From: Zygnema circumcarinatum SAG 698-1b
Lineage: Eukaryota > Plantae > Zygnematophyceae
Reading direction: 5' to 3'
Assembly (NCBI GenBank): GCA_037447605.1
Contig: CM074807.1
Location: forward strand, 4,173,993 to 4,237,992
DNA: 64,000 bases
Below the pieces are notes generated by a model. That model searched no databases. It worked only from the letters and a program-made list of their open reading frames with translations, and was not told where the DNA came from. Below are positions 1,273-44,411 of the stretch, piece after piece. Every line of letters begins with the position of its first letter. Position 1 is the stretch's first letter. The position numbers were made by a program, and so were the translations under genes.

Positions 1273-3100
1273 CCCCCCCCCCCCCCCCCCCACCCACCCC
1301 CTCTCCGCCCCCTATCTCCCTACCTCATTCCCCCTTCCTCACTTCCCCGACCCTATCCTCCCTCACTCCCCTTTCCTCCCTTTATGGCGGAGCCCTTGTG
1401 GTGATTGCCTCTGTCAATGCTGCAGTTTGTTGGAAGTATTGCGAGAAATGAACATCCCCGAAGGAACCACCGTATGTATTGCCGCAAACGAGAAAAGAGG
1501 GGTTTTTTGTTCCACTTGCTGCTCATTACAACCTCAGGCAATTGAGAAACTACAAGTACTCATGGGCCGAGGGAAGTGTTTTGAGGAACCAGACGAAAAT
1601 TATCATAAGAGTATGGAATGTTCCTCAATTTGATGGAATTGTGGAGGTAAGGGTCTCATGAATTTTAAGTTTACAATCCTGGAGAGAGAGTCCTGGGTCC
1701 AGGCACTTGGGATTGGTCAGTGATTTCTGAATGAATGAACAGGAAACCACTTTTCCTACGATTACTGAGTGGCACGTGCTCCTAACCGATTTTCACTAGT
1801 AGCGTATAGGCCACGGATATGGCTTTAGGGTTTCATCTCCCTCCTCCCCCTTCCCCCCCTCCCCCTCCCTCCTCCCCTCCCTTCCTCCCCTCCTCCCTCC
1901 TCCTCCCTCCCCTTACCTTCTCCCCCTCCCCTTCTTTCCCCCCTCCCCCAAAACACACATCCCTTCCCCCCTCCCTGCTCCATCCGCTGAACGTGCTTTT
2001 GCAATGGTATCAAACAGGGTTATTCCCCCCATAGGACAAAACATCAAAAAGTGTTATTCCCCCCATAGCACAAACAAGCAAGCACCTGCTGGCGCTCATT
2101 CTCGGGCGCCTAAGCACGTCAAATCGCAATCAGCTATCCTTCAGCTTTGTTTATTTCAAATGGCTTCCTCTGATGAGTCCGAGACTGCACCGTCTTCTTC
2201 TCATGTGAAGTATGAAGCGCACAATGGCCCACCCGCCCAGCCCTGCGAACAGCCAAATGACGAGAATGACGAGCTTCCACTTGTTGTTGCTGATCGTGAC
2301 AGGCGACCTCAAGTACTTGTACGTGGCAAAAAGAACAAGCTCGAGCTTTTTAATCAGAGGGGAGTTTGAAATTTGTCGTTGTTCGATCTCCCTCGTATTT
2401 CTTCCTTCTCCTTCAACACCCGTTTCTCTCGTGTAGCAGGCAAGGTGTTGGGCCTTCCCTTCTTCCCAAGGCGAAGCCGAGCCTTCCATCGGGGTGCAGC
2501 CCCCAAGTAATGCGTCGTTTGCTTCTGTGGGGCTGAGCAGTTGGCGCTTCTCCTCTCTCGCCTCGGGGTGGGTGATGATGGCCCCTGCATTTTAAAAGAA
2601 ACCGCAATGGATTGACGTGTCAGTCACAAGCAAAAGAAACAGAAAGTAGAAGTCCGAGAAACACCGGCGGGAAGTAATGAATGTCGATGAGATAGATGTG
2701 GTGCTAGTTGAGTCGGTCGAAACAATAGATTTGCACTAAACGAGACCCGACCTCTGTTTGAGTACTTCGATGTGCAGGTTGTGAAAGAGACCAAGGATAC
2801 GGACTGCATATCAGAAACTGGAAGATTAAACCCGACTTCAGCGGTGGCTTCCGGGTTTCAGCAAGACATCTGCCATACATCTCGCGCAGAGAGCGTTCTC
2901 CTTGCATGAAACAGATACAGATAAACAAATTCCTCCAGATTTCCTCAGTCATCCATCTCCTCAAGTGACGTATTTTTCTTTGTTATTTTTTTTACCCAAC
3001 GACGTTAAGATAGACCTATGAAAGGTATCACTTTGACGAGGAACAAAAATATGATTCAAAACGTCGAGGCACGAGTACGTTTCTTCAGCTGTCAACGAGA

Positions 3101-6100
3101 CTAGTCACCTGGCAAAGCTTCCCGTTTGTAGAATAGGAGCCACTCGAAAAATCCGCGATGTTGCCATTCGGGCAGTCTCCTCCGGCATACACAGTAAGAT
3201 CGGAGTTCCAACCACAGCCGTCCAACTGAGTAGAGATGGTTTGATACGAGTTTTACAACCTAGAGATCCCACCAATGCCAACTACTTTCTGATAAATGTG
3301 AAATGCCAATAAACTTATATAACAGAACGATAGCATTGGAAACGATTAGCTGAGTCTGGATGAACAAAAAGAGTTCAAATTAGTAGAGTGAACTGCCTGG
3401 AGAAGCTAAGGCAGCCCGTCTACAATGTAAGTGGGTCTGCAAATTTATGCGTAATGCGGCGATTCCAGTCTGTCGTGGCAGCTGATAAATTGAGACAAGA
3501 GATGCTTATTGCTCACCTGAGGAAGTTGTGCTGCTCGTTTATCTCCAAAGGTGAAATAGAGAATCAGGGGCCACCGAGCCTGCAATTCAGTATATACAAA
3601 GGTGACAATTGATGGTTGGCCAAACCGCATATCATCAACCAAACGAATGGCACCACGTCTGGGCACGAGCAACGATGGAAAAATACCTTTTACCAAAACG
3701 ATCCTGATTGGGCAAAAGTTCGGGTCAGGAATTCTTTGCCGACTGGTGAGAACAGGGAGAAGTTAAAGATCAATCCACCTGAGAAGCTGCCATCCACTGA
3801 ATCATCGACTTGATCTGTAAGTCTCCCTTAAAGACCCCACAGCCCCAATTTCCGGTCGCCACAGCTCCTTCAGAAACCTGCAGCTCGGCACTCTGCAATC
3901 GGTTCATCAAGGGGAAAAACAAAGCCTCTCGTATTCTCGCTTGCAGAGCTTACTAAGCTTGTACAATTAGTGTGTGTTTTTTTGCCAATAAACACGCGTC
4001 ACCGGACCATGTTCAAAATGGTTAGCCTGCATCAGGACGACGTTTAACTTAACCGGTTCTGATCAACTCCAGCTTGCCTTGGTTGTTTCAGTAATTTCAG
4101 ATATTTCACACAGACGAGGTGTCGCTCTGATGATGCAAAGCTACAGTGACTTCATCACAGCTCTTCCTGCGATTTTTCCCCTAACCATTGACCGCTCACC
4201 GTAGCTGCGGGGGTTGCCTCCGTAAGCTTATCAGCCGAGGGCCTGAATCCACAATAGGCTTTGTTGATTTCCCTGAAGAGCACACAGCATGGGCATGTCT
4301 ATCAGGCTCGCTCAAGATGTCAACATGCTTGGTTCGGTATTTACTCTTTCCATTATTCAAGTAATAAGACCTCACACAGGGGGGGGCTATCAATGTCGTA
4401 CCTGAGAGTGAACCTGTCTTCATATTGCCGCCGTTCCGCATCTTCAAGAGCGTCAATGGCGACAATTTTCGTGAGACGTCTCCCCAAGTCATCACGTGGT
4501 GTTTGATCTTCGTAGTCACCAGCGAAGGTAAATGAAGCGCCGTACCTATATGCAGAACCCCATCCCATGGAATTACTGAATCATCGTCAGCGGAAGCCAT
4601 TCGATGCAATAATGACCGGAAGACGAGGGACTGGAACTGGAAGCATCGATAGAATCAAACATCTCCAAACTCCAAACTCCTTTCCTCCTTTTTGTATTGA
4701 AATGATGGTTTGAAAACAACAGAAAAAAGGCATCAATTTCTGGGATGCATCTGAGCTCCCCAGCAGCAGGCATATCCTGCACCACTTGTCTGCAACACCC
4801 CCTGAGGCTCAAAATCTCGACCCTAATTGTCACGTCACGCGGCACGACCAACGAACACAGGGCTTCCAAGTTCCAATGCCGGCAGCCGTTGACTGGGTCA
4901 ACGGTCAAACTCCACCGACGAACTTCACGCAACCACGTACTGCCACGTCGGACTAACAGCACTGTTCCTCTCCAAAAAATCAATGGGATTCCACCACGTG
5001 CCCCTCCCGGAAGATAGAAATCCTTACAGTTTGAAATTACCGAGCCCCGTTCAACTGGACGGGACTAGACACGTAGACACGCTGCCATACCGTACAAAGC
5101 GGCCAACTGCACAGCGCTTTTCTTTCCCAGTCTCCGAGGAGAAATGCGGTGGCTGGAGGAGGCAGCGCAAAAAAGCACTCGCGTATCCTCACCATGTTCA
5201 CAGGTAGGAAAGTCCAAATCTCTACAAGGGGAAACCCTTTGAAAACTAAGGACCTGTTTATGGAGGAGTGAAAATGTTACCCCTTGTAAGAACTGAAGCG
5301 TTCCGCTCCAACCACCTCGATCGCTTCCCTCTCTCCCATTCGCGGACAAATCAGCATTCCCACGATCAGTTCTGGCGAAATCATAAAGCGAATTTCCTCC
5401 TGCAGAGGTGGAAGACGGGAGAAAAACCAGACGAGTGAGAAGGGTTGTTCATTGAAACATTTGAAGGCTTGCATTTATTAATGGCACCTGAATCGCACTC
5501 AATTGATAGGCCTCGCATATTCCACTGCATAGCTGTCCTCCTCACCGTTTTCTTAGTTTAGCATCCCTGTCAGTTGACCATTCTTTCCCACAATTCCCAC
5601 AGCCATTTTCCTTCCGAAGCGACTTAACATTCAGTCTGCAACGGAAGAGAGTCAGAACTACGTGAAAGGGTTCTTAGAGACCTGAACACATCCGGATCCC
5701 AGTGCCCCCCCGCCGAGAAACTTGTTCGCAAAATCCACCTGCAGACAGTTGCTGTCCATGTCTTCTATTGCGCCGCATGCTACGGCCTGCTCCACAGCCA
5801 ATCATCACACTCTGCATTGACTATTCCACACGGTTCGGCACCGAGACGAGGAATATTCTGTTCGAAAGCCAAGCCACTATTGATGTGGTTTTTATTCCGG
5901 TTCCAAGCTACACATGCAAAGCTTTCACTCTTCTAAATGCACTACCAGATCTGTACGCTTCATCCTTCCTCAAGCAAAAGGAGGGCGCCGTACCTCAAAT
6001 CTGTTCAGCGGAGTCGTTTGACATTCCCAGAAAGTATCCTCGCTAAACGGTTGCTTTCTATTCTGGTATCCAATCAGATTGGAAGGCAGCAGTTTGCGTT

Positions 6101-7523
6101 CAAAAGAGATACGACCCGTCGGCATTTTTTTGCGCACTCGGTCGAAGTAGTGCAGTAGACACAGTAGCTTCTCCTTCTGTCCGCGGCTGCAGGCCATGTG
6201 TCAAACCAGGGTGTCAACAAGCAAAACGTTCCAAAGGATGCGTTCTTTTTCATATCACATTTGCAGCTTCGTCCAAACATGCGATTAGCTGCTCTAAACA
6301 CGTTCTTTCGTTCTTTACGTGTGAGGTAAGCTGGGAATCAAGTGAGAATGCCCTAACATGAACAGTTGATCAAAGTTGATTGGTGGAAGGTCCCTCTCCT
6401 TCCGGCGAGCCTCGGGAAAAAGACACAGAAATGCGCAAGCCAGAGTAGAGGCGGCAAGCTCCTGCAGCAAACAGAAGAGACTCCCCCAAACCGCCAGCCA
6501 GCAGCTCAGTCGTCGTCCTTACAGGCCGGCTTTCATTGCGGGTTAGATGAGACTATTGGAGTCCCTGCCCGTGCAAGGGGGATCATCCATTGGACATTTT
6601 GTAAACGAATGGCGGATGGATTCTTGGAGTGCAGCGTTTATTGACTATCTAGTCCCAAAATGTTCTGAAAGTGCTGAATTCGACGGGCATTGATTCCGAG
6701 CGATTGCTGTCATTTCTAGCAGAAATAGTGAGTAACGTTATGGTTTATGTTTCTGGCAGAAAGGGGAAAAAGTAAAAAAGGCTCCGTTGGCTTACCTGAC
6801 TGATAATCACAGCGGCAGGTTCACCTGAGTGCAATATATCAAGGGAACACGACGATTCACATGCGAAAACATCCAGATGCATGACTCTATTCCGGTCTCG
6901 ATAGGGGAATTTTCTTGGTTCCTTGTTCATCAAGTCTGGGAAGTTCCTTGCAAGCTCTGCTATGGAGGGGAAGATTTTGGAAAAAAAATGTGATTTGGAG
7001 AATTCTCCATGTCCATTCTCTTCGAGAACCTGCAAACAGTGAAACGCATTCACTGACTGAAGGAAAGTCGTCAACACTGATAGACAGTGATGCTTGCTTA
7101 CCACTTTCTCACTGCACCCACCTGCTGATGTGTCAAAGGTAAAATTTCTCAAGCACATGCGCTTCACGGCGAGGGGCAAAGGTAATCCTATTTCCCATCT
7201 GACAGCCCAAGAGCTTCTACTGTACTTGATCAAATAAATATAGCTTCTGGAAGTGATTAACTTACATTCTCAAAGAAATATCGAAGGCCCTTTCGCAGAG
7301 GTTCTCCTGTACTCAGTTTCAATTGTCCCCGGAGCTTATCAAACGTATGAATAAGCGAGGTGGCTGACGAAATTTCGATCGCCTTTGGCCCTTTTGAAAT
7401 CTCGTCGAGACTCTCATACAGATTTTTTTGCAACGTATAGCCTGACGGGGGAAGCACTGGCAACATATCGGAAACCTCAAAGTTCAAAGTCTCAAAGTTC
7501 CGCTTTGCATTACGAGAATCCAT
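3101..7523 (-). CDS. PARG: Poly(ADP-ribose) glycohydrolase, paralogue A (11 exons, about 521 aa)
   Basis: Exons 7523-7266, 7029-6796, 6461-6358, 6186-5994, 5786-5682, 5399-5281, 4545-4402, 4272-4200, 3892-3779, 3579-3517 and 3259-3101 are all GT-AG and phase-consistent (1566 nt). Motifs: [19 protein letters not shown]|EEIRF (GGG-X7-QEE), [44 protein letters not shown]. Confidence 0.95.
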
Positions 7524-7883
7524 TGCCTATCAGAAGAAAAAGAGAAGCAAGAACACTGAAATCCCTGATGCTCTAGGTTCTGCAAGGGGCTCCAGCGCGG
7601 CCTAATCATCCGTCCAACAATCTTATGTTGACATCCTCCTCACTCTTGGTCGGTAAATTGCAGGGCGGCCGCCTGCAAGGCCGCAGGTCTGTGAATTCCC
7701 GCGAGGTGGAGGGCCTGCACCTGCATGGCTGCGCATGGCCTCGGGAGCTGCCGAGGCGGACTAAGCCCGGCTGCGCCATGCTCGCTGCAGCTCTATGCTC
7801 CTGCTCGCCGCCGCCACGTGCACTTCCAGAAGCGCCATTAACACATGCAACTTTTAGGAACCCGCCGGGAGCTGCATGCCACC
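7524..7883. promoter_or_regulatory. Putative bidirectional promoter/5'-UTR region between PARG (-) and PARP-like (+)
   Basis: About 360 bp between the divergent ATGs; GC-rich core with a CACGTG G-box near 7815. A PARG 5'-UTR intron acceptor lies just upstream of its ATG. Confidence 0.55.
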
Positions 7884-10071
7884 ATGCCTGAGCCGAAGAT
7901 CCATGGCCTCTTGCCGGTATGTACTATGCAGTTCACATGACGATAGACGCACGCCTCGCTTTCTTATCATGCGAATTTTTAAACATACATGAATCAGTTT
8001 TCTGTTATGCACATATTTTTTTTTTCCATGAAGCGAGTCTAGATGTTTCATTTTTCAAACTCTTTCACATGATACAGCTCGCTTCTGTACCAACAAGTCG
8101 CGGAAGTACGAAAGTCAATCTTACGCTGCAATATACATCTCAGGGCAGATCTCGCTAGTTGTGCCGTCCTACTATGCATCGAATTGTCTGATTTCGAAAA
8201 ATGGAATACCTTGTAGAGGTTGAAGGTTTGTGCGGATACCTTTATTTCTCTCCAATACTACTGGATTAGAGAGCTGATTGTGTTCGCTGGGCAGGTATAA
8301 CCATGCATATAAGATACAGCTGATCTTGCGAGATGTAAATATGTGTGTTTATGTAGTTAACTTTGGAAGTCACATCTGTTTTCACCAGTGTGTCATAGTA
8401 CCATTTCTGCAAGTGGAGCTTTCAGTCGTCTGCATACTTAGAATGTCGTGTCTCAAGGAGCATGAAAATGACGTGCTGGAAAGTGACAGTACGTGCAATG
8501 TGAAAGTTTGCAATTTTTTTGCGTTGTGCAGACGAGGAATTGGCAGAAATCCAATCTCTTATAGACAGCACATTCATCAGGAGATACGTCGGAAGGTCAA
8601 GAGACTATCGAAGTCCTCCGCAAGGGCAATACAGGTGGTTTCTTGCGATTGAAATGTCCTCGACAAGAACGATCTGGCGTCATCTTGAATGCATTGGAAG
8701 GCCCATGGCTCGACTCAAAATCAAGAACTGGCTACAGTAAAATTTGCATGCATGTTCAGATCGGTGGCAAGGAAGTTGCTTCTCTTCTCATTCTCTTTTT
8801 ATTTCCACACATTCGTTCACATTAAACAAACGATGCGGAAACTTCCGTTCAAGCTTTAGATATTGCTTTCAGATTTTTTCGAGGTTTTTTTTTTCCCTCT
8901 CTGATAAGTTTGACGATTGCATGCATCCAGACAACTCACTGTGCACTCTGCCTACGCGGCACGCCGCACGCCCAGTTTCGCCGCGCAGTTCCCGTGCTGT
9001 TCCCACAGCACATGCAGAGAATGTGCACCGACGAGCGAGTCGCCGTACGTGGCCGAATGCGCCACTCGGCCGTGCCTTCCCTCCTCGCTGAGGCTGGATG
9101 CACATGAAGCAGTTTTGTTCCATGGGACAACTGAAGAGGCTGCTTTGAATATCTTTAGGTGCGGTTTTGATACCAGGCATTGCAGATTGCAGATGTTTGG
9201 CAAAGGGATATACTTCACAGAGCACTCAAGCAAAGCAGATGTTTATGCTGAGCCGTCTAAAACAACCGGTAAGAGGTGGAGTTCAATCTGGCTACCTTCA
9301 ATGCATAGATGCATTCTGCGATAAAATGATCTCTTGTGCGCTTGTAGGTCATCTACAGTTTTACAAACTGCACTTGCGTCTGTCCTTCGAACTGGTGTCT
9401 CAATCATTTGCGACGCCTGTTAGGGCGTGGGACATTGGTCTAAATCTTTATGTAGGGCTGGCGACTGAGAAAGTTGATCCTGATTCTGTGTATGTATCTG
9501 CTGCGCTGTTATCTCTGTCCTGCTAATCCATCCAACATATTTGCATCCAGGCCTCTTTGTGATGGTCGTTGCACGAGTGTTTTCGAGCAAACCGCACATA
9601 CAGTTGAGGCACAATAACTCACTCACTGAACCTCCGAACGGCGGGGATGCGCTCATAGCGCCAAGAAGGGTACGGCACATTATACAGTTTGCCTGCAGCT
9701 CTTGGATATTGGAAATTTTTCCTTCAACAAAGAATCATTAAAATGTTTTGGTCACATCCTGCGTGTTATGGTCCTCCTCAGGTGGAGGTTTGAAAGCGAT
9801 ACCGCTCATGGTGAGTATGTTGCAAGGGCTTGCATGTGTGGCATGCTCCTCAGGACGTGGTCTTCCTCGACATCTAAACTGGATCAGTTGAAGTATCCCG
9901 CACGATGCACCTTTGAGGAAGGAGTGTGTGAGGCTCACTGAACCCTGACGGCCTATTTGCGCCATGCAGAATGACCATGAAGATGCGGAGCTTATACTGT
10001 ACAGGGAATTCGTCTTTCATAGCTCGCATCACTGCGCCCCGCTGTACCTCGTGTACTACGAAAGGGCTTGA
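7884..10071 (+). CDS. Small PARP/ART catalytic-domain protein, tankyrase-like, H-Y-E triad
   Basis: Phase-consistent exons about 8931-9268 (EAVLFHGTTEEAALNIFRCGFDTRHCRLQMFGKGIYFTEHSSKADVYAEP), 9551-9669 (GLFVMVVARV...PPNGGDALIAP) and 9970-10071 (ELILYREFVFHSSHHCAPLYLVYYERA*). Probable upstream exon from 8532 (DEELAEIQSLIDSTF...SRDY). The 5' end is uncertain: candidate ATGs at 7884 and 7903 precede the donor CG|GTATGT at 7917. Confidence 0.85.
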
Positions 10072-11600
10072 AGAGGCTGCAGTGCTGCTGCTGCTGTTGA
10101 GGTCGGCGCTGCAGTGCATGCGGCGTCTTCAAGACCCAATCATCACAATCATGACATCAATGGGAACATCAGTAATGTTCTGCCCAATCACGGGCTTCTC
10201 AAGAACAAGAGGAATGTTGTACCTTTCCAACTCATCAATTGGCCCTACTCCACTGAGTATGAGCAGTTGGGGCGCCAACTTTGTGTTAAGGATTCTATTT
10301 CCGTTTTTCCGTTTCCGTTATCTTTTTTTTTTTTTTAAGACCCAGGGTAGATTGCGTCGTGATGTCTGCTTGCTTGAGTGCGGTGACGGTTCCTTCCCTT
10401 GCAGTGTGATGTGATGTGCTGTGCTGTGCTGTGCTGTGCGGGCAGTTCTTCGTGGTTCCCATCATTTGATGGCATCATCGCCATGTGTGAGATCCATGCC
10501 ACATCTTTCCTCAGCCGAACTCTGTCATGCCCAAACAACAGGAATAAGGAGCGAGAAAGCTCAGAGAGAGGCTGCCAAAAGCCTAGCTGACCTATGTGCT
10601 TTAGTTATTTGTTCGCTGTGACAGCGTCCTGTGCGGCAGCGATCCACCCACCCCGAGTCACATGTGGCAAATTATGTGTCGCAGGTACAACGCAGCGAAA
10701 GGCCAATCCCGTAAAGTGCCGCAGTTTCTGTCATTCGACAGGCACGTACTTCCGTACCTCTGTACGTCCGGGCCTCCCGCGCGCCCGTGCTCACTCACGG
10801 GCGGGGCCGTGTCGTGTCGTGTCGGCGCGCGCCATCTTCGAAAGATCTCCGGCGCGGCCCTCCCTCCCATTGGCTGCAGGCCAATAGTCAACCTTCAGTG
10901 CGCCACGTGGCGCTCACGTGGCAGCCCCTTCCGCGTCTCTCCGCTCGCCGCGTGTCCCTCCGCTGTTCCATGCCAACGGTCGATCGCGCGCAATCCGCGG
11001 ACTCGTACGGACGGAAAGATTTCCGTCCTGTGTTGCTTGTCGCGGAGCGGTCAAAAACTTCAAAAGGTGACGTCACTCTACTGCGCGCCGAAAGCGCCGA
11101 CACGATCCATCGGCCGGGGGGCCGCCCGCCGTCGAGACCTGGTGACGCCAGCAAGGTCGCTCTCATCCACAGTCACGCATCGGACGGCGACCATTCGCGG
11201 GAGGCGCGTGGAGGTGATCTGGAGGACATCGGACCGTCCGTAACACGTGGAAAGGCGCAGGCCCATTGGTGAGCGTGACGGCAATCCACGTGGCAGCACC
11301 ATCTTGGGTTGCGAATCGCCGCGGGACAGCGGAAGATGCCATCGCGTTGTACGAAGTGCGGACGGCGCCGTACGGGCGAGGATGTTTCCGCCGCGCGCCG
11401 GCGACATCACCAGCGGGGTCGACATCACTGCTCCGGGCGGCCCAACATCACTCCTCGGAGCTGCCCAACATCACTCCCAGCAAAGGGCAGTCGGTGCGGC
11501 GCGGCCCGAGGGGGAGAGGAGAGAGGGAGAGAGGATAGAAGAGGGGAGGAGAGAGGAGGGGAGGGGAGGGGAGGGGAGGGGAGAGGGGCGGCGCAGAGCC

Positions 11601-13584: not shown

Positions 13585-16500
13585 TCAAGACTGCTGCTGC
13601 TGCTGACACATGCACTCAGGTGCGGGATACCCAATGACGTCCCGCCCTTGCCGCGCGGTGCGCAGCTGCATGCGGCTGGACGTGTCGCCCTGCGCCTCCT
13701 TCACCGCCGCTTCGAAGTCTCCAACGGGCAACCCCCCCCCCCCCCGGTCCTGCAGAAGCTGCGCCACGAGCTTGCGCTTGTTGGGCATCACGAACTTGCG
13801 CGGCCCAAAAAAGGCGCGATGCCCCTGAAGCCGCGGGGCACAGCACAGCAAGGGACTGACTGACTGGTCAGTGGCAGCGCCCTTAAGGTGGAGCACACAC
13901 TCCGATTCTACACAGACTACTCATCGCTAACAAGGAGCAGCATCTTACAACAGGAAGTGGGTGGGTCAAGGTAATGGTTTTGGAGCTGAACCTGAAGAAC
14001 ATGCGCCATGTTTCCACCGTGCGATGGCATGAAGACATCACTTTCGAGGGCGATAATGAAGTCGATCGCTGCCAACATGTTGCCGTGGCGTGCCACGTGT
14101 GCCATTTCCGTTGATTCTGCCAAGGTCCACTTCGTATGGATCTCTGCAAAAGCTTCTTTCAGTGGGGCTAACGCGACATCTCCCCCATACGGCTCTCCTC
14201 CAGCCCAGAATATTCGCGTGCGCTTGCTGGCTCCCAACGCCTTCAGTATCCTGCATGCATGCAGGATGGCCACGGGATTGCCATGAGTTAGGTCCAATCA
14301 GGGCCATTGAAGGATGGACAATCACACTGAACTTCACACCTTTCTCCTATTCCAAACTACTCTGCTACACACCTGACAACCATGGCTGCGGAGAGAGGGC
14401 ACAGCCCATTTTGCAACCGCTGCTCGAACGTGAGATTGCTCCTCGCCGTGAGCAGTTCCGGTTTCAGCTCACGTTCCCGCACAATTCCCTGGTCGAGTTC
14501 TTCACCAAGCCCGGGAAGGCACCCCGTTCTGACCCAAACATCCTTTTCAAGCCTCAAGTGCAGGGCAACATACGGCCCCTCTGCTGCCATGCGGGAGGCT
14601 AGCTTCTGTCCAATCTCCTGAATGATGGGAGAAAATTTAAGCGCTTCAAACTCCACCTGCGGTTGCCTCCACCGGTTTGATCATGAGCATACAGAGCAGT
14701 GACAATGATCACTATATGGGCTTAAAGATAAACGACTAGGAACTGCCTTACTAAATGCTTTCTTTCTTGCTACTTGATGCGAAGAAGATGAGGAATTGGC
14801 CATGCAAACCATACTTTGCAGCGCAGACGCTGAAGATCAAGAGGCAGGTCGTCAGCGAGGGCGCCATCCAGCCCTCTGATGATCATCACGTGGTCTTTCC
14901 GAAGCTGCAACGCCGCATTGCTACGGTTCAGCCCACTTTCCACTACTGTTTCTGTAACTGAGAACCTGAATGGGTGACAGACACACAGCGGACCACCGCT
15001 TACACAACGTTTGTGCTTGTAACCTTCGTCTCTCCGCGGCAGCAACCCAGGTAGACCCACATGGTCCTCACAGCTTGCGTATCTGCCAGTCTGACAAGTC
15101 CACACAAGCAGAACAGCTTGCATGAATGTAGAGTCGGGATTTAGACCTGACGGTAGAGATTTTCGAACAGCCATTCTGGAGAAGCTCCGAGCTTGGGCTG
15201 ACGTTCCACCGCATGAGTCATACGCAGATGTGCAACCGGCAGGGAGGTGACTATGCGCACATCGCTGTTCAGCACTTGCCGAAAGTGCGCCACATCAAAC
15301 AGATCTGCAAACTCGCTGCACACAACTTTCCAGCAGCCCTTCAGAAGCCAAGCTGGCAACCAGCTAGACTTTATGCTTGATAAAGAAGAGAGTCAGTATG
15401 AAGCCACAACGCAGATGCACACATGTGACACAAATAAGGCAGCCCAGTGCATGGATCAAAGTTGAAGTCGAACTGTAAAACTCTAGTTTTCAGTTTCAAA
15501 GAGTAAAAGTAGACGGCATAAAGCTTTGTTTTCCACAAACGTGGCCAATCCAGGCCTTCGAATTTCTGCAAATGTCAAAAGAAGAGATGAGTGGGGTGGG
15601 AAGAGCCGCAGGTCGGCTTGCCTGTGATCTTTCCATATGCCGTTGTACGACAGGACGGGAACCACTAGCGATGCTTGAAGCACGCGAGCGATGACGACTG
15701 CTGTCCCAATTTGGCGCCGCATTTGGTTCAAGCCGCCGGTCACAACTGCCACAATGTATATCTCTGACTTGAGCACCTTCTCGGACTGCTGCCTGTAATC
15801 CTCGCTCTTGTCCAAGCACGGCTGCCACCCTTCTGCATCCGGCTGAAGCACCCTCCCCCCACCCAGTTCTCTCACTTCTTCTTCTTCTTCTTCTTCTCAC
15901 TTGTAAGCAATTGAGAATGTATTCAAGTACATGCTGTGGTGGCATTTTGATCAGTGATTCGTAATCAGCGTTCTACAAGGACAGACCCATCCCCTACCCG
16001 GATGGATCAAAAAAATGAAGGAACTACTACCCTCTGAACTTCTCTAAGTGGTTACCAAGAAGTCGTGGAACAGCACATGCCCCGCATGGAAACTCAAGGT
16101 TTAGCGTAGAGTATAAGTGCTTCTGCACCTTAGAAAACGGTTGCTTTATCCCCAATAGACTAAAAGTGTATCGGACTCTCATAGAACGTATAGCTTCTAT
16201 ACACTTGCTATTATTGAAGTCCTCGACACGTACATTTGTTTCAACAAAGATAGAAATTTCAGCCAGATAGGTTCATTGGTAAGGGCTAGCGATTTTCGGT
16301 AAATCTAAGGAGCTATATTGAAGCAATTTCATAAGTTAAAAAAATGTCGTGGGCTCGACCATGAACCCCATTCGGAAAGGGAGGGGGTAAGGAGAAATGA
16401 AAATCTTCTATCGAGCCCTGTCTAATGTAGAAGAACAGTTGATGCGAAGACATGTTGTCCATCACATTTGAACTTTTAGCTTCAGGGGATGCACTTGTTC

Positions 16501-20424: not shown

Positions 20425-21156
20425 ATGAAGCAAGAGCTACAGGAGAATGCGGCCACTGCAGCCGGTGCAGTTGCTCCCCGTGTGGAGGAATCAGTAGACG
20501 GTTGGCTTATTGACTTTGATAGACAGCTCTCAGCGAGGTTGTATGTGGAGGGAAAGGGGACTCTGAGGTGGTTTCTCATTATTTTGGAGCACACAGGCAA
20601 TGGCTTATTCTGGCTGCCTGTTTCGCTGGCCACGTGGCTCTCACCATGGCCGCTTTCTCCCATATTTCGAAGCCTACTCCTCAACTTATTCTTTGCGTTT
20701 GCTCTCGACTTGGTGGTGGTGGGGACTATAAAATCAGTCGTGCGCCGATCGAGACCTAGCTATAATCACTCAATGTCGCTGGTGTTGGCTGCGGATAAAT
20801 GGTCTTTTCCTAGCGGCCATTCGTCTCGGGCGCTCCTGATTTCTTCCTTCTTTATGTTGTGTAAAGAGTCACTGAAGGCCAGCGTCACGTCCGACACCAC
20901 CGTTCATCTGTTGCTCACTGCTCTGTGTGTGTGGGCAGTGGCCACAGCCTCTTCCCGAGTACTTTTAGGCCGACATTTTGCTATTGATGTCATCATAGGC
21001 GCTCTTTTAGGCATGTTGGAGGCGCATGTTGCTCATCGTTTCCTTTGGATCCCTTGGAAAGTCTCCGAAGGCTTGCATCATTCAGCTGTGCAGTGCCTCT
21101 CTATGCAGTCATCTTGCTTTCAATCGCTCTCCAGAACAATTTATTCATTTGAATAG
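20425..21156 (+). CDS. PAP2-superfamily lipid phosphate phosphatase (LPP-beta/PLPP6-like), intronless
   Basis: 243-aa ORF with all three PAP2 motifs (KSVVRRSRP, FPSGH, SRVLLGRHFAID) and several hydrophobic helices. Confidence 0.93.
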   Translation: MKQELQENAATAAGAVAPRVEESVDGWLIDFDRQLSARLYVEGKGTLRWFLIILEHTGNGLFWLPVSLATWLSPWPLSPIFRSLLLNLFFAFALDLVVVGTIKSVVRRSRPSYNHSMSLVLAADKWSFPSGHSSRALLISSFFMLCKESLKASVTSDTTVHLLLTALCVWAVATASSRVLLGRHFAIDVIIGALLGMLEAHVAHRFLWIPWKVSEGLHHSAVQCLSMQSSCFQSLSRTIYSFE

Positions 21157-23084: not shown

Positions 23085-36995
<13,911 letters not shown>

Positions 36996-37072
36996 GTCTC
37001 TCGAGAAAAGAATGGCTCCTCGAGCACATAGACAGCAAGCAAGCAAGCAGTCGTCTCCGATGCTGCAAAGGG

Positions 37073-37108
<36 letters not shown>

Positions 37109-37347
37109 CCTCCCTCCCTCTCTCGCCAAGGCGAGGCGGGCGCGCTGTGCGAGGGCGCTGTGCGCCACGTGGGGCCGCGAGCAGCCCGCAGGCGTGGCCC
37201 CGCGCCGCGTGGCGCGCGCGCATTGGCGCGCTCCGCCACCTGCGCACTCCCGCCCTGCCCGACCGTACGGAGTTGTACGGCCGCAACCAGTCTCATGCTC
37301 GCGGCTTCCGTACGGGCGCCGTCGTACGTTTCAGTACGGACGGGCGG
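36996..37347. promoter_or_regulatory. Putative bidirectional promoter between ABCC (-) and PARG-B (+)
   Basis: Divergent genes with ATGs about 350-530 bp apart; GC-rich; CCACGTGG G-box near 37165; GTAC cluster at 37265-37368; (GCCT)n at about 37073-37108. Confidence 0.55.
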
Positions 37348-37512: not shown

Positions 37513-40500
37513 CGCTGGCGGCCGGCCAGAGCAGAGGAGCAAGGGCCTTCCCGGGGAGGCGGGGCCGTCGCGGAGGCACGCTGGCAGACAGCAAGCCGCC
37601 CACATTTCTGCTCCCGTTTGGCCCGCAGCTCTCGGGCGACAGCGGCGGCCACCCGTACTCATGGCCGCCAGAAGTGGAGGACGCCTTCCGCTCCATCTCT
37701 CGGGGGCCCTCCACGAGCCAGGTGGCTGGCGGAGAGGCGCTGGCGGATGCAATCATAGACATTCGGCGCCAGCTGTCCTTGAGCGATGGCAACCCGCGAC
37801 TCACCGCTGGCCTGCGGGTTTTCTTCGAGGAGGTAAGCATGGCTGGAGTAGGGAGGGAGGGAGGGAGGGACGGAGGGAGGGAGGGAGGGAGGGAGGGACG
37901 GAGGGAGGGTTTCTCTGGTTTGACGCGGCCCCATCTTAGCTGACGAGATTTGGAACGTCTACGTGGACCACTTACTTCTCGACCCTTTACGTTGGCAGAG
38001 CGCTTCCTTGCAAGGCTCCGAAGAGGTTAAAGTTGCTAACACATCTTCTCCTACTTCGTTTTATGTGGTGAATTCTTTGAACCGGTTCGTTTTCTATTAG
38101 TAGGACTACAACTTTATTGCGACGTCCAATGATGAAAGCATGTCTCCCTCAGACGAAAAAAGTAGACAACTTGCTTTCAGTGGACAAAGTGGACAAAAAG
38201 AATGGGGCGATTTTTTTCGCCATATTCAAGGATATAACAAGTGTTTGTGGAATGATGGAGCCTTACAATGCCAAGGTCGCGGAGTCAACAATTTCCCGAA
38301 TGTCTAGTTGTGTTTTAGACCCGCAGTCACCTGCATTTTCTAAAATGCTTCCCACATTGTATGCTTTGACACGTGAAGGTTTAAATGTTTAAATGCTGTC
38401 GAGCTACACTGTGGAATTGCGCTGGGTTCAGTCGCTTTGCTTTGGTTATACTTTGTTATAACGAGGCGCGCATTTTCCCATTCAATGCGGCTTACCACGC
38501 TTGCCATTGAGGTTGGAAATGCAAGTCACTTAAAAAATTGCTCACCAAGCCACTACTGACAGCAGTTGGAAGAAAGAAAAGGAATGAGCAGGTCCCAAGG
38601 GATGGTTACCGCTTGGATGTGATATACTCAGGAGCAAAGAAGCCATTTGGATTACCATTAGGAGTGATTTATTAAAGTACTCAATTGCTACTGAAAATAT
38701 AAGACCCTTCAGTTTTAGGCGAGGATATCATCATTCGCTCCCCGTGCTTTACGGTTTTAAACATTCGGATGTAGATAGCTTGCGCAATTTACCCATTACT
38801 TTCACCCATTGTTTCCTCTGTCGTTCACAATGAATGCTGTGAACCCTTCCTCAATCTTCTTCTTTTTGCCATTGCATTGAAAAGGTCAGAAAATTTAAAA
38901 AAAATGACTTAGTGATCTCAAACAACTGATAAATGCCTTGCGTCGTTGCCCTTTCGTAAACAGCCTTCTAGTGAAGGTCAGTCTCGGCGGGGTCTGATGC
39001 CATGACCCAAATCCTTGCAGGTGCTGGAGGAGAGCAAGGCAACGGAGTTCTTTTGTAGCACATTGCCGTTCATGGCTTCTTTGGCATTACGACTGCCCGA
39101 ACTTCTCATGTCGCAAGCGGTTGGAGCTGCTGAGGCTGCCCAGCAAGCATGCAGCGAATCAGGGAGCAGTAATCACAGCCGCAGCCCTCCCCAAATGCGG
39201 CTGCAGATTCTCCACGAACAGCAGCCAGGACTCGTTCTTATCTCTCAGGTGGCCCATGAACTGCATGCAGGGCCAGTAGTTATCTTCCAATAAGCGTGTG
39301 AGGCTGATGCTGTAGTGGCGATGCCTCTGCTTGTATGCCTTCGAGCGTCGTTAACTGTGAATGCAATCGTAGTCAAGCATGCAAACCGTCGATGTTGTCC
39401 AAAATTCTGGGCCATTTGCTTGCTGCAACCATGCTGTTCATGCTGCTGAATCACTGAAAAGAGTTTCTTAGCCAAAGTGAATTGCATTCCCAAGACTATC
39501 TACTGACGTGCAGGCCCATCTTGGAGCCCATCCATGATGTGCAATGTCTTGTGTTTCAAGTGTTCATATCCGAGTGGTATCTTTATCCTTCGGGAAATGA
39601 CTTGACTTTTGTATTGCCTCTTGTTTTCGAATTCCAATATATTTCAAAGGAGTGGACAGCTTGCCATTTACCGAATGCATTTCGAGATGATTTGCGTCAT
39701 GAACGAATATATGATTGTTATTGATTGTCCTATGACGGCTTCTAAATTTCCTGACTCTTTGTCTGCTTTCAGGAGCTTGCCGCAGCGCTGCTTGTTGGGG
39801 CCTTCTTCTGTGTCTATCCAACAACTGGCAGAGCACAAGGTCGACTCCCTGAGATTAATTTCGACCGCCTTTTTTCGTACGCTGCTACAACCTTCTGTGT
39901 TTATTCATTGAGCAGTAGATTTTCAGTGAATGTTGGCCCAGAAGTAAACATTTGAAGTCTCGTGTATTCTTGAATTTGCCCTCTTGAAACGATTTGACTG
40001 CCTGTGTAGTTCCCCTTCATACACATACCCTTTTCCATTGTGCATCCTTTTTTGCGCATTGCATGGTGCAGGAGCGTGTTCGAGCCCGGGCAGGCGCAGG
40101 AGAGCAAGCTGCAGTGCCTCCTGCACTACTTTTCGCGTGTGCGCAGCGAAATGCCGCTTGGGAGTGTTTCCTTTGAGAGGAAAGTGCTCCCAAAGAATGG
40201 CTCCGCGAGTCTGCAAGCTGCTGGTGCTATTGGTGGCGGTGGTGGCAGCAGCGGCGGCAGCAGCGGTGCAGGGCTTCCCCCGGCAGTTCCGGAGGCCGAC
40301 TTTTGGAAAGCCCGAAAGACTCCTCTGTGCAAGTTCACGGTACGAGCTCATATACAATGTGCCACTGTAGGCAGTTAGTGGTTGGAAGCTGCTTTAGGGG
40401 TTCTTGGTTGTGTACCGCAATCTTGCTCACTTACTCTATGCCAGTTTACCACCCCCCCCCCACCCCCCTTTTTTCTTTTCTTTTCCTCTTTCGCCCTCCC

Positions 40501-43500
40501 ATCTTTGTTCTTTTTCAAAGAACGAGCCCCTGGGTGCATTTGATGTTGGCATAGGTCGTGCTAGTAACTTTCCCACGTGTTGAAGGCTGCTATGCCTCTG
40601 CAGTATCCACCTCTTGCCTTCATTCTACCTACCTTCCTAGGCTAATGGCTTACGGAGGCCATATACTATATTCTTCCGTTTCTCTGTTGGAAACGCTCGT
40701 CAAGAGCGTTAACTGCTCGGTGTTCATGTAGGAATGGAACTAGTGCTTGTTGCAATGGAAGAAGACTTTTTTCTGACATAGACTGCGACTTCTTCCTCTT
40801 TTTCAAAAAGGAAGGACTGAGTACATTGAAGTGCCATCATGTTGAAGCATTTTTCTATGTATGCAAAAAGTCTCCTTGCACGTGATGACAATTGTCCTAT
40901 GGAATAAACCATACTCTGCTAGCTTCTATACCGTTGTGATTCACTGGCACTGGACGGTTTTACTGCATACGCAGATATTACCAACTGGAACTATTGAGGA
41001 TGAAGGAAGGGATTGCCTGCAAGTGGACTTTGCCAACGCCTTCCTGGGAGGTGGAGTTCTTGGCTATGGCTGCGTGCAGGCAAGCGCCCACTCGTTGGAC
41101 CTTTGCGCCTGTTTTCATGACAGAGAGTGCAGATAGTAGAGCAACGAGAGGGTTAGCCTCCACGTTGAGGAAGCTATGGAACAGAATGGTAGGCATTGCG
41201 AAGAAAATGCTATTGGCTGCTGGCAAAGGACGGGAGGGAGACTGGAGGTTTAAGTGTGATGAAACGATAGAATGTTGAAATTGTTGTGGCGAGATGGATG
41301 GCAGGCTTCTTGCTCGTTTTCGAAAGTTGATGATGAGATTTGGCGAGCAGGAGGAAAATCACGCTCTTGGGGAAAACAAGTTGCATGAATCCTGGAAATG
41401 CCGTTTTGAAGCAGCTCTTCTGGAATGCTGAGGACATGATAAGGGCCACTGTTCAGATCTGGAAACTGGTTCGTGGATGTTCAAGGACCGAGTCTGTCCT
41501 GCTTGAGGTTGAAAACTATACTGACTGAACAAACCATGTGGGAGAATACTGGCAGTCTGGTTTGATTGGGGGCTGATACTTCTTGGGATACGCAGAACTT
41601 AAGACATACTGAGAGGTTGACGTGGGGGGGCAGTGCAGGAGGAGATCTGGTTTGTCATCTATCCCGAGCTGATCACAGGGATGTTGTTCCTCTCAGCAAT
41701 GGCAGACAATGAAACCATTGAGATCGTCGGGGCGGAGAGGTTCAGCCGCTATACAGGGTGAGCTTGTAACATGCTGCAGGAGGACTGTAGGAGATGCATT
41801 ATGCTTGTTGTTCGGTGCAATTGGCTCGTCTGTTGAAGTTGGCGCGATCACGATGTTTCCTGCAATGAAGGGAATGTGCTGTAGAAACTGTTTAGTTGAC
41901 TATCGATCATCGTCCATGGAATTCCCTTCCTATGGTTGCGTGTCATTTGCCTCGAAGACCTAGTTGTACACTTCGAATTCTGGGGTTGAGTATTATTCAT
42001 GCTTCAAATCTTTCTCAGAGGCTGTCAGGGAGTTCATCTTATGCACGGTAATTCCTGCAGAGACTCTCGACTACAATATGAAGCGACGAGACACTTGAGA
42101 TCGGAACATAAGAATGGAAACTTTCTTCCTGCTTGGCTATAACTCTTTCTGTACTGTTTCCTGAGGGAGCAGGTACGCTTCCTCCTTCCGGTTTGCCCGT
42201 GACTTCAAAGACACGACTTTGAGGGACGCTTTGGGCCGCCGACAGACGAGGATTGTGGCCATGGATGCCACCGCCAATGCCGGGGAGAGGCAGTTTCGTG
42301 CCACTGCAATGCTAAGGTGAGAGCTTAGGGCAGGGGGTTTACGGTTTAGGGGGAAATGGAGGGGAAGGAGTTTGCAAGAGGGAAGTGGCCACTCGTACAT
42401 CATGAACTATGAGGATGAACATTGTCGAGGGGCACGTACTGTTTACCAATTTCATGTGCATAGTTCGATCCTATGCGTGATCCTATGTGCATGGACTGGG
42501 AATGTTCTGTCACAGGTTTTCTGTTCTCTGATCCGCATTGACCACGGGTTTTTTTACCAGGGATTTGAACAAGGCCTTCTGCGGCTTCCTGGACCATGCA
42601 TCCATTAGAAGGTACGCCGGAGCGCCGCCTCGCCCCAGCGGGGGCAGCAACTCACCAGATGGCATTGCGGCAGGGGAAGCTCGAGCAGCAGTCAATCAGA
42701 ATGCGGCAGGAAGTGGAACACATGAAGGAGAACTTAGGGCAACTGACACACCACAAACAATAAGCACCCCTAGGAGAGGCCCTGTGGAGGAAAGCCTGAG
42801 CAGGGACAGCATACTTCAGAATGGCAAGAGGCAGCGGTGGACCTATGCTGGCATAGTGAACCTGCAGGCTGAAGGGGGGGAGCTTGGAGCGAGGCTTGAA
42901 TCTCGGGAGGACAGCTCGGAGGCTGAGGTTAAATGGCAGCAGAGGCGAAATGGTGGTGGGGAAATGGCCGACGGGGAGGGAAGGCAAGGAAGGTTGCTTC
43001 TGCAGGAGTCGGCTGCTGCGGCAAACGAGCAAACGAGTTCTGGAGACTTTTCGAGGAGAGGTGCAGGAGACGGGGGTTCAGGGTGGGGGGCTCGGGATAG
43101 AAGTGGAGAGGGCAGCGGGACAGGTGGCGTTCTGCGATTGGCTGGAGGAGAGCCGTCGAGTGGGGCAACAGTGGGGACAGGGTCCACGGCCGGGTCGGGA
43201 TCAGCTACGGGAATGGTAGGGGGAGGGAGCATGGACAATGGAAGCGCGGATGAAGAGAAGGAGGATTTGGCGAATGAAAATGACAGGATTGGAGAGAGGA
43301 GTCAGGGAGGGCAAGGGAGGCCTGAGAGTAACGCGGGTAGCTTTGAGGGGAGTGAGGAAGGAGCAAAGGAAGGTGAGGGAGTTTTTGGGTGGTCGCAGAG
43401 GAATAACATCGGTGTTGCGACAGGAAATTGGGGTTGTGGGGCGTTCGGAGGTGACTTGGAGGTGAAGAGCATTTTGCAATGGTTGGCCGCCTCGCAGGTA

Positions 43501-44411
43501 GCGTGCTAAGTCCTTAGACGAGAGGCCCTTTGACGAAAGTGAAAATGCTTGGTGGCAAGCAAGCAAAATGGCGGCAGGGGTTCTTCCTCCTCAGCTTGTG
43601 CAGCTGCAAATCCGAGTTGCCGATGATTGGGATTGACCTTAATAATGTAAAGGAAGGCTGCGTTGGCTTCTTCTTTTACATCAGTTTAGTTACAGTTTTA
43701 TCTTTGACATCAATTCCAGGGATGTGTTGCCAGGCTGGCCGGCCCTTTGTACTCTACTTCCCCTTTCAAGACCGCCGTGCGACCCGATTGCATGAGGTGT
43801 GCAGAAGTCTCAGCCTACTTAGTAGCAACGAATTCAAATTGAGTGTAGGGTTTTCTTCCAAATTTGGAAAAACACATGAGGACAATGCCTTCTGTGTATA
43901 GGGATGTGAGGGCCAAGGCACCACCGTTTGTGAAATTTATATGACTCTTGCGTGCGGAGTACCTTAGAGATACTGTCAATTCATGTAAGGATAGTTTGCG
44001 CTTTGAGACAGGGGATAGATGAAGGGGAGGAAGGCCTTTGACAGAGTAAGGGAGAGAACGAACAAGAGAGAAATATTGAGTAAAGCGTATTTTTTGTTCT
44101 CCATCATTTTGCAATTTATGACGATTGAACTTTTTAATATTGATATAATTTTACCTTGTTTCTGGAGGAGGTTGATATGACAGGTTACAAGCTGGATTCA
44201 AACGGAAAGCTGGACAGTTGGCGAGTTATGGCATGTAGTTTCAAGTTATGGAAGGGCGAGGGTGCGACATGAAGTGCATGCCGGCTTCTTCGACTGGCTC
44301 CGCCCTCCACTAGATTCAGGTATCTGCTTCTCTTCTTCTTTTCTTCTTCTCTCTTCTGCTCGTTCGTCCGCAGGAATGGACATCACGCTCATTGAATGGG
44401 AGTACTCTTGA
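37348..44411 (+). CDS. PARG: Poly(ADP-ribose) glycohydrolase, paralogue B (start and last exon uncertain; possible extension to 45854)
   Basis: Exons 37530-37832, 39021-39248, 39773-39876, 40072-40339, 40975-41079 (GC donor), 41639-41757, 42173-42316, 42561-43497, 43734-43796 and 44184-44319 are phase-consistent. Motifs: [19 protein letters not shown]|[50 protein letters not shown]. Confidence 0.94.
37455..37510. repeat. (CT)n microsatellite
   Basis: Read directly; a second (CT)n lies at about 32662-32700. Confidence 0.97.

Follow-up and report, generated by a model that had tools for sequence, protein, structure and literature searches.

A PARG gene and a small PARP gene lie head-to-head

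We analyzed a window of 64,000 nucleotides from Zygnema circumcarinatum SAG 698-1b (NCBI GenBank assembly GCA_037447605.1, contig CM074807.1, positions 4,173,993 to 4,237,992 of the forward strand; all positions below are those of the window), in which a PARG gene on the minus strand, here called PARG-A, stands head-to-head with a gene for a small PARP on the plus strand. The physical linkage of an ADP-ribose writer and eraser, an intact PARG beside a PARP with an intact H-Y-E triad, was confirmed. The PARP exons were taken from joints in RNA contigs, with the cuts set at GT/AG. These contigs came from four public runs (X1–X4; X2 and X3 belong to one study and X4 to another), and X2–X4 behaved as cDNA. 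The contigs are unstranded Logan unitigs, which end at branch points of the assembly graph and carry no information on strand or transcript ends. The features of the PARP gene were as follows.

7524–7916 (certain part), plus strand: PARP 5′ exon A, non-coding; donor after 7916, joint 7916>8532 in X2, X3 and X4
7884–7916, plus strand: upstream open reading frame (ORF) from ATG 7884; 21 codons, ending at TAG 8562–8564 in exon 2, out of frame with PARP
8201–8225, plus strand: PARP exon B, alternative first coding exon; joint 8225>8532 in X3 and X4
8532–8634, plus strand: PARP exon 2; RNA joints, translation and family alignment
8931–9268, plus strand: PARP exon 3, with the H (LFHGT) and Y (GKGIYFTEHSSKADVY) motifs and PF00644; RNA joints
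9551–9669, plus strand: PARP exon 4; RNA joints, translation and family alignment
9782–9810, plus strand: PARP exon 5, alternative, 29 nt; joints 9669>9782 and 9810>9970 in X2, X3 and X4
9970–10071, plus strand: last coding exon of PARP, with YREF (catalytic Glu); stop at 10069–10071

The PARP reading frame of 687 nt was open across five exons and encodes a PARP catalytic domain of 228 amino acids with H-Y-E and no other domain. Pfam placed PF00644 in the plus-strand ORF 8917–9324, with an E-value of 5.9e-11 on exon 3. The small plus-strand H-Y-E PARP of a preliminary description of this locus was thus borne out by PF00644, by the LFHGT, GIYF and YREF motifs and by the stop codon that closes the frame.

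In exon A, the catalytic frame is interrupted by a TGA at 7889–7891 and has no later ATG, whereas ATG 8201 of exon B leads in frame into the 228-aa protein. An in-frame TGA (8189–8191) precedes ATG 8201 with no AG between the two; in the absence of an acceptor there, an N-terminal extension of the protein is excluded. The exon B residues YLVEVEDEEL match the first beta-strand of the family, [LIV]-V-D-V-T-D-E-L, and residues 10–227 of the model align to PARP domains at the C termini of other proteins. The spacing at the junction of exons 4 and 6 is identical to that of a relative, P0011. Judged by translation and alignment, the true start of PARP is probably ATG 8201 of the alternative exon B. 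The preliminary description had begun the gene at a first candidate ATG about 360 bp from PARG. That ATG, at 7884, does lie exactly 360 bp from the PARG-A ATG, but it opens the out-of-frame upstream ORF and is not the PARP start, and the distance from the PARG-A ATG to ATG 8201 is 677 bp.

Two further splicing choices affect the coding part of PARP. Inclusion of exon 5 adds, by translation, VEV and a stop upstream of the catalytic Glu, and a joint that skips this exon (9669>9970) was present in X2 and X4; the 29-nt exon is thus a predicted poison exon. An alternative intron inside exon 3 (9045–9192, 148 nt) shifts the frame and was found in run X4 only.

At its other end, the 3′ end, PARP overlaps a convergent minus-strand transcript, as shown by an X4 contig (window 9969–10259) in which the region of the last PARP exon is joined to an exon of the minus strand that is spliced at 10259. 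A reading by eye of the convergent ORF 10129–10278 as GMC-oxidoreductase-like was dropped, as Pfam gave no match.

For PARG-A, ORF pieces were joined into a spliced model in which all introns are GT-AG.

3101–7523, minus strand: PARG-A; 11 coding exons, 531 amino acids, ATG at 7523, stop at 3101–3103
7523–7266, 7029–6796, 6461–6358 (alternative donor 6319) and 6186–5994, minus strand: PARG-A exons 1–4
5786–5682, 5399–5281, 4575–4402 and 4272–4200, minus strand: PARG-A exons 5–8
3892–3779, 3579–3517 and 3259–3101, minus strand: PARG-A exons 9–11
5281–5786, minus strand: PARG-A exons 5 and 6 together, with DFAN and the catalytic GGG-X7-QEE

The only ambiguous donor was that of exon 3 (6358 or 6319), and both choices keep the frame. 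Pfam found pieces of PARG_cat_N and PARG_cat_C (helical and macro-fold) in minus-strand ORFs between 3770 and 7233; the exon pieces matched PF05028 (macro-fold catalytic) at E-values of 5e-15 to 2e-9 and PF20811 (helical) at 2.7e-4. Land-plant PARGs aligned to residues 16–521 with 39–41% identity. The GGG-X7-QEE motif spans the junction of exons 5 and 6, being split by intron 5 (5681–5400), and agrees with the GGG-X6-8-QEE signature of canonical eukaryotic PARG. Among 52 near-invariant columns (at least 90% conserved in a set of 41 PARG proteins), 49 were retained in PARG-A, and the three exceptions (A440V, G442K and L454M) all fall within the diphosphate loop. The intact 11-exon minus-strand PARG with GGG-X7-QEE was therefore upheld by Pfam, by the spliced model and by the alignment with plant PARGs. 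An alignment of the exon pieces to moss PARGs as a search profile was too scattered and was dropped.

The window holds a second PARG gene, PARG-B, 30 kb from PARG-A. When placed in a tree together with 41 other PARGs, the two genes fell in the land-plant clade beside a moss PARG (support 94/93), with branch lengths of 1.2 for PARG-A and 0.53 for PARG-B, which makes PARG-A the more divergent paralogue. A single clade of PARG-A and PARG-B was not rejected by the approximately unbiased test (p = 0.088). Based on motif, columns and tree, PARG-A is predicted to be a catalytically intact, fast-evolving paralogue of canonical plant PARG. It resembles land-plant PARG1/PARG2 in its place, with PARG-B, inside that clade and in keeping the signature and nearly all invariant columns, but differs in its long branch and in the V, K and M changes of the diphosphate loop. 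In Arabidopsis, PARG1 and PARG2 are adjacent, and the two linked paralogues here recall that pair.

Introns 1, 4 and 7 of PARG-A were seen as RNA joints: sense splicing of intron 4 was found in run X1 and of intron 1 in X3, and intron 7 was spliced in all four runs. Spliced transcripts of PARG-A and PARP occurred in the same public libraries, so both genes are transcribed, as had been supposed. The preliminary description had named a dead or untranscribed PARP as telling against its proposal; spliced transcripts are present here, and with H-Y-E intact the protein is predicted to be active.

The contigs point to two other kinds of PARG-A transcript. A joint from 5399 to 5994 in run X3 marks an in-frame isoform without exon 5 (105 nt), which would lose DFAN and the GGG loop and would thus encode a catalytically dead PARG. 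In the region of exon 7 and intron 6 (window 4401–5402), RNA-like contigs with a start inside intron 6 and with intron 7 spliced out have a depth from 6–9 times (X2–X4) to about 300 times (X1) that of the PARG-A 5′ exons, which suggests an abundant short PARG-A 3′ transcript from an internal start. Rfam gave no RNA family in the whole window, nor in intron 6, so a hosted small RNA does not explain the high-depth contig.

The PARP resembles the catalytic domain of tankyrases

The PARP model carries the H (LFHGT), the Y (GIYF), the Ser and Tyr of SSKADVY and the E (YREF), and the Gly, Ser and Tyr of the nicotinamide site are intact, which places it in the PARP/ARTD superfamily. A HMMER search with exon 3 against 1.84 billion cluster representatives gave 315 matches, the best with an E-value of 8.5e-15. 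No close orthologue was present among these representatives, only distant matches. As a control, the PAP2 ORF of the same window was searched and likewise had no self match, which indicates that the proteome of this genome lies outside the searched collections; the absence of an orthologue there is hence weak evidence for the lineage itself. The best full-length relatives had about 30–35% identity over the domain. Those of named origin came from Mastigamoeba, choanoflagellates and marine protist transcriptomes (MMETSP), and others came from metagenomes; most carry PF00644 alone, and none is from a plant. A metagenome scan for close relatives returned two weak, unrelated loci, and the ESM Atlas returned generic PARP clusters only. 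A length-limited protein search with the PARP ORF gave no match and was uninformative because the candidate lengths were restricted.

Among solved structures, tankyrase-2 was the best match to exon 3 alone (E 4e-6), and tankyrase was also the best match to the profile of PARP and its relatives (E 5e-30, whole domain). The next matches to the profile were PARP15, 12, 14 and 10; PARP1 was much weaker, and PARP16 was outside the best 60. With the tankyrases (TNKS1/2, PARP clade 4) the protein has in common the H-Y-E triad and the HG...YF..SSK..Y nicotinamide site. In contrast to them, it has neither ankyrin repeats nor a SAM domain, and in-frame stops bar any N-terminal extension that could hold these; the protein begins at the first strand of the catalytic domain. 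The zinc-binding Cys/His loop of tankyrases is a gap here, whereas it is present in the relatives P0011, P0078, P0032 and P0132. By sequence, the protein would therefore represent a tankyrase-type catalytic domain that lacks the ankyrin, SAM and zinc-loop marks of the tankyrases themselves, and it is predicted to be a catalytically competent, untargeted, tankyrase-like ADP-ribosyltransferase. The nearest sequence relatives are the 'orphan' protist PARPs (Citarelli et al. 2010, PMC2964712), which likewise consist of the PARP catalytic domain only; they have about 30–35% identity with the present protein, however, and include no plant member. In published surveys, green plants have PARP clades 1, 2 and 6 only (PMC2964712, PMC4245714), and a 2025 survey of 175 plant species found PARP1-3 and one odd Chara protein (PMC12785305).

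A decaying gene would explain part of these data. PARP would then be a relic confined to its lineage and turning into a pseudogene, with transcripts that are mostly unproductive by-products, as the three kinds of unproductive splicing, the lack of a close orthologue among the 1.84 billion representatives and the loss of conserved family motifs might suggest. We consider this improbable, given that a frame of 687 nt has stayed open over five exons, that H, Y, E and the Gly, Ser and Tyr of the nicotinamide site are intact, and that the spacing agrees with that of the relatives along the whole domain.

RNA contigs cover the spacer

Contigs of X2, X3 and X4 cover the gap between PARG-A and PARP without a break and run on into PARG-A. 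In X2, a single unbroken piece extends over 5175–7916, and in X4 another extends over 5420–7915 and continues with 30 more letters of exon 2. Both pieces traverse PARG-A introns 1–5 free of branches, yet are spliced at the plus-strand donor 7916>8532, and neither X2 nor X4 contains minus-strand PARG-A joints for introns 1–5. In X3, two plus-strand GT..AG joints (5201>7137 and 7179>7662) were present, together with ends flanked by adapter sequence at 5140 and 5343. Because of the orientation of the splice sites and the absence of branch points, the simplest reading appears to be a long non-coding plus-strand leader of PARP, which would start in intron 6/exon 6 of PARG-A and run antisense through exons 1–6. 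A bidirectional-promoter pair would have opposite-strand start sites within about 1 kb and an untranscribed promoter between them. The shared promoter of 360 bp that had been proposed between the genes gained no support from these data, as the region is covered by RNA and the ATG that delimited it belongs to the upstream ORF.

We interpret the locus as a pair of ordinary, intron-bearing nuclear genes that are head-to-head and overlap, consisting of an intact, divergent PARG and a tankyrase-like, domain-only PARP whose output is limited post-transcriptionally, and we give this reading a probability of about 0.55. The output of PARP would be limited at three points. Its commonest 5′ exon is non-coding, rich in upstream ATGs and, as far as the contigs indicate, antisense to PARG-A over the 5′ half of that gene; the alternative first exon with ATG 8201 would be required for a productive mRNA; and the 29-nt poison exon would also have to be skipped. 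Of the transcripts from this unit, which would overlap PARG-A in antisense, productive PARP mRNA thus appears to be the smaller part, the shares being uncertain. The chains of ADP-ribose that the enzyme may make, whether short or long, could be trimmed by a PARG, and expression of PARG-A and PARP may be coupled by their overlap, possibly in opposite directions. PARP and PARG-A may be functionally linked.

Several points weigh against this interpretation. The long X2 and X4 pieces may represent PARP exon A merged with PARG-A pre-mRNA that had not been spliced, instead of an antisense leader, and contig depth is a poor measure of isoform share. The searched collections offered no close PARP orthologue from which purifying selection could be read. 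The family motif R-[IV]-E-N is lost from PARP and the Cys/His zinc loop is deleted, and either change could equally mean decay. A more elaborate version, in which transcription of the leader silences full-length PARG-A while splice choices release PARP, so that writer and eraser form an antisense-coupled switch, perhaps for stress or cell death, seems to us very improbable.

Linkage, recurrence and mobility

The pairing of PARG and PARP, which the preliminary description wished to see recur in other lineages, was not encountered elsewhere. At the PARG locus of Ceratodon purpureus, no PARP-like sequence was found within 10 kb on either side, and topoisomerase I lies upstream. Nine contigs (2.5–5.9 kb) with four kinds of distant PARP relatives contained no PARG by annotation or tblastn, and no PARG was present at the two further weak metagenome PARP loci either. 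With short contigs and distant relatives, these are weak tests of recurrence.

Such results would be expected if the genes were chance neighbours, that is, if a PARG and a small PARP had come to lie side by side in a compact genome whose PARP-like repertoire is enlarged and their overlap were transcription noise. The topoisomerase I neighbour of the moss PARG and the nine contigs without PARG agree with this, as does PARG-B, which likewise stands head-to-head, about 300 bp apart, with an unrelated ABCC-type transporter; divergent placement is therefore not special in this genome. The chance of a PARG-PARP adjacency, however, is about a few per thousand by a rough estimate that assumes about 10 PARP-like genes, 3 PARGs and about 17,000 genes, and that ignores the many pairings that a scan can notice. 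We regard chance neighbours as an unlikely explanation, albeit one with appreciable weight.

Around the pair (2500–11500), no inverted repeats were found, and direct repeats were at chance level only. The base composition of PARP fits that of the neighbouring genes, with GC contents at third codon positions of 0.56 for PARP, 0.51 for PARG-A, 0.64 for PARG-B and 0.53 for the PAP2 ORF. A selfish element, one form of the module that had been proposed, is thus disfavoured by the lack of flanking terminal or direct repeats and of foreign base composition.

That proposal in full had the two genes form a self-neutralising module, be it a toxin/antidote pair, a selfish element or an immune switch, with PARG-A dedicated to reversing the product of PARP and PARG-B left to do the housekeeping. 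A writer and an eraser of one chemistry are indeed linked here, both intact and transcribed, PARG-A is a divergent paralogue with unusual changes in its diphosphate loop, and tight limits on productive PARP mRNA would fit a harmful enzyme. On the other hand, the hallmarks of a mobile element and a foreign base composition are lacking, the pairing did not recur at the moss PARG locus or on the nine contigs with distant PARP relatives, and a simple shared promoter gained no support. PARG removes ADP-ribose chains and leaves the protein-proximal unit; it would make a poor antidote if PARP only mono-ADP-ribosylates. The toxin/antidote, selfish-element and immune-switch readings gained no support, and such a module is in our view a long shot.

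Comparison with known gene pairs

The human genes DTX3L and PARP9 are head-to-head under one interferon-responsive bidirectional promoter (PMC11251020). As at the present locus, both members of the head-to-head pair belong to one ADP-ribosylation pathway; there, however, a ligase is paired with a PARP and the shared promoter is mapped, whereas here a writer is paired with an eraser and the transcripts seem to overlap. DarT/DarG offers another likeness, an ADP-ribosyl writer that is genetically linked to an eraser of macrodomain fold. The bacterial pair is a single-strand operon with a DNA target, a different type of macrodomain and proven toxicity. In contrast to that one-strand operon, the genes described here lie on opposite strands. 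We know of no plant PARG that is head-to-head with a PARP.

Both families were already known; the novelty lies in a PARP of tankyrase-like, domain-only type that occurs in a streptophyte and apparently overlaps a PARG paralogue. The published repertoire of green plants comprises PARP1-3, the inactive-looking RCD1/SRO proteins and clade 6, to which the present PARP would add a type of writer. Its apparent overlap with a PARG paralogue makes this a concrete locus at which to ask how an untargeted ADP-ribosyltransferase is kept in check in a eukaryotic cell. Should sister lineages turn out to share the pairing, eukaryotes would have their first writer/eraser gene pair of this kind; otherwise, the gene would be one more lineage-specific PARP.

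Other genes in the window

The following genes were identified elsewhere in the window.

37608–44321, plus strand: PARG-B, paralogue of PARG-A, with GGG-X7-QEE intact
about 27600–37286, minus strand: ABCC-type transporter; TMD0 at 36534–37286, ABC_membrane and ABC_tran, further ABC domains at 27626–29836
13917–15174, minus strand: gene of the O-fucosyltransferase family; weak Pfam match and motif read by eye
20425–21156, plus strand: PAP2 lipid phosphatase, single ORF

A scan of larger ORFs of the window revealed no further ADP-ribose-related genes. The best named relatives of the PAP2 ORF were from a lycophyte (46%) and liverworts (about 42%), which points to a deep-branching position of the organism among streptophytes. 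In PARG-B, the ORF 42538–43509 holds a low-complexity stretch of about 270 amino acids, rich in Gly, Ser and Glu, between KAFCGF and GNWGCG in an uninterrupted frame, which may be either an intron that keeps the frame or a genuine insert of disordered sequence. On the side of PARG-A towards the start of the window, positions 1–2000 contain proline-rich, GC-rich low-complexity repeats and an assembly gap of 30 N. The Ceratodon purpureus PARG gene occupies 2.1 kb (L001 10001–12107) for 497 amino acids, and its residues 149–405 were recovered in one tblastn segment; the short span and the single long segment indicate far fewer introns than in the 11-exon gene described here.

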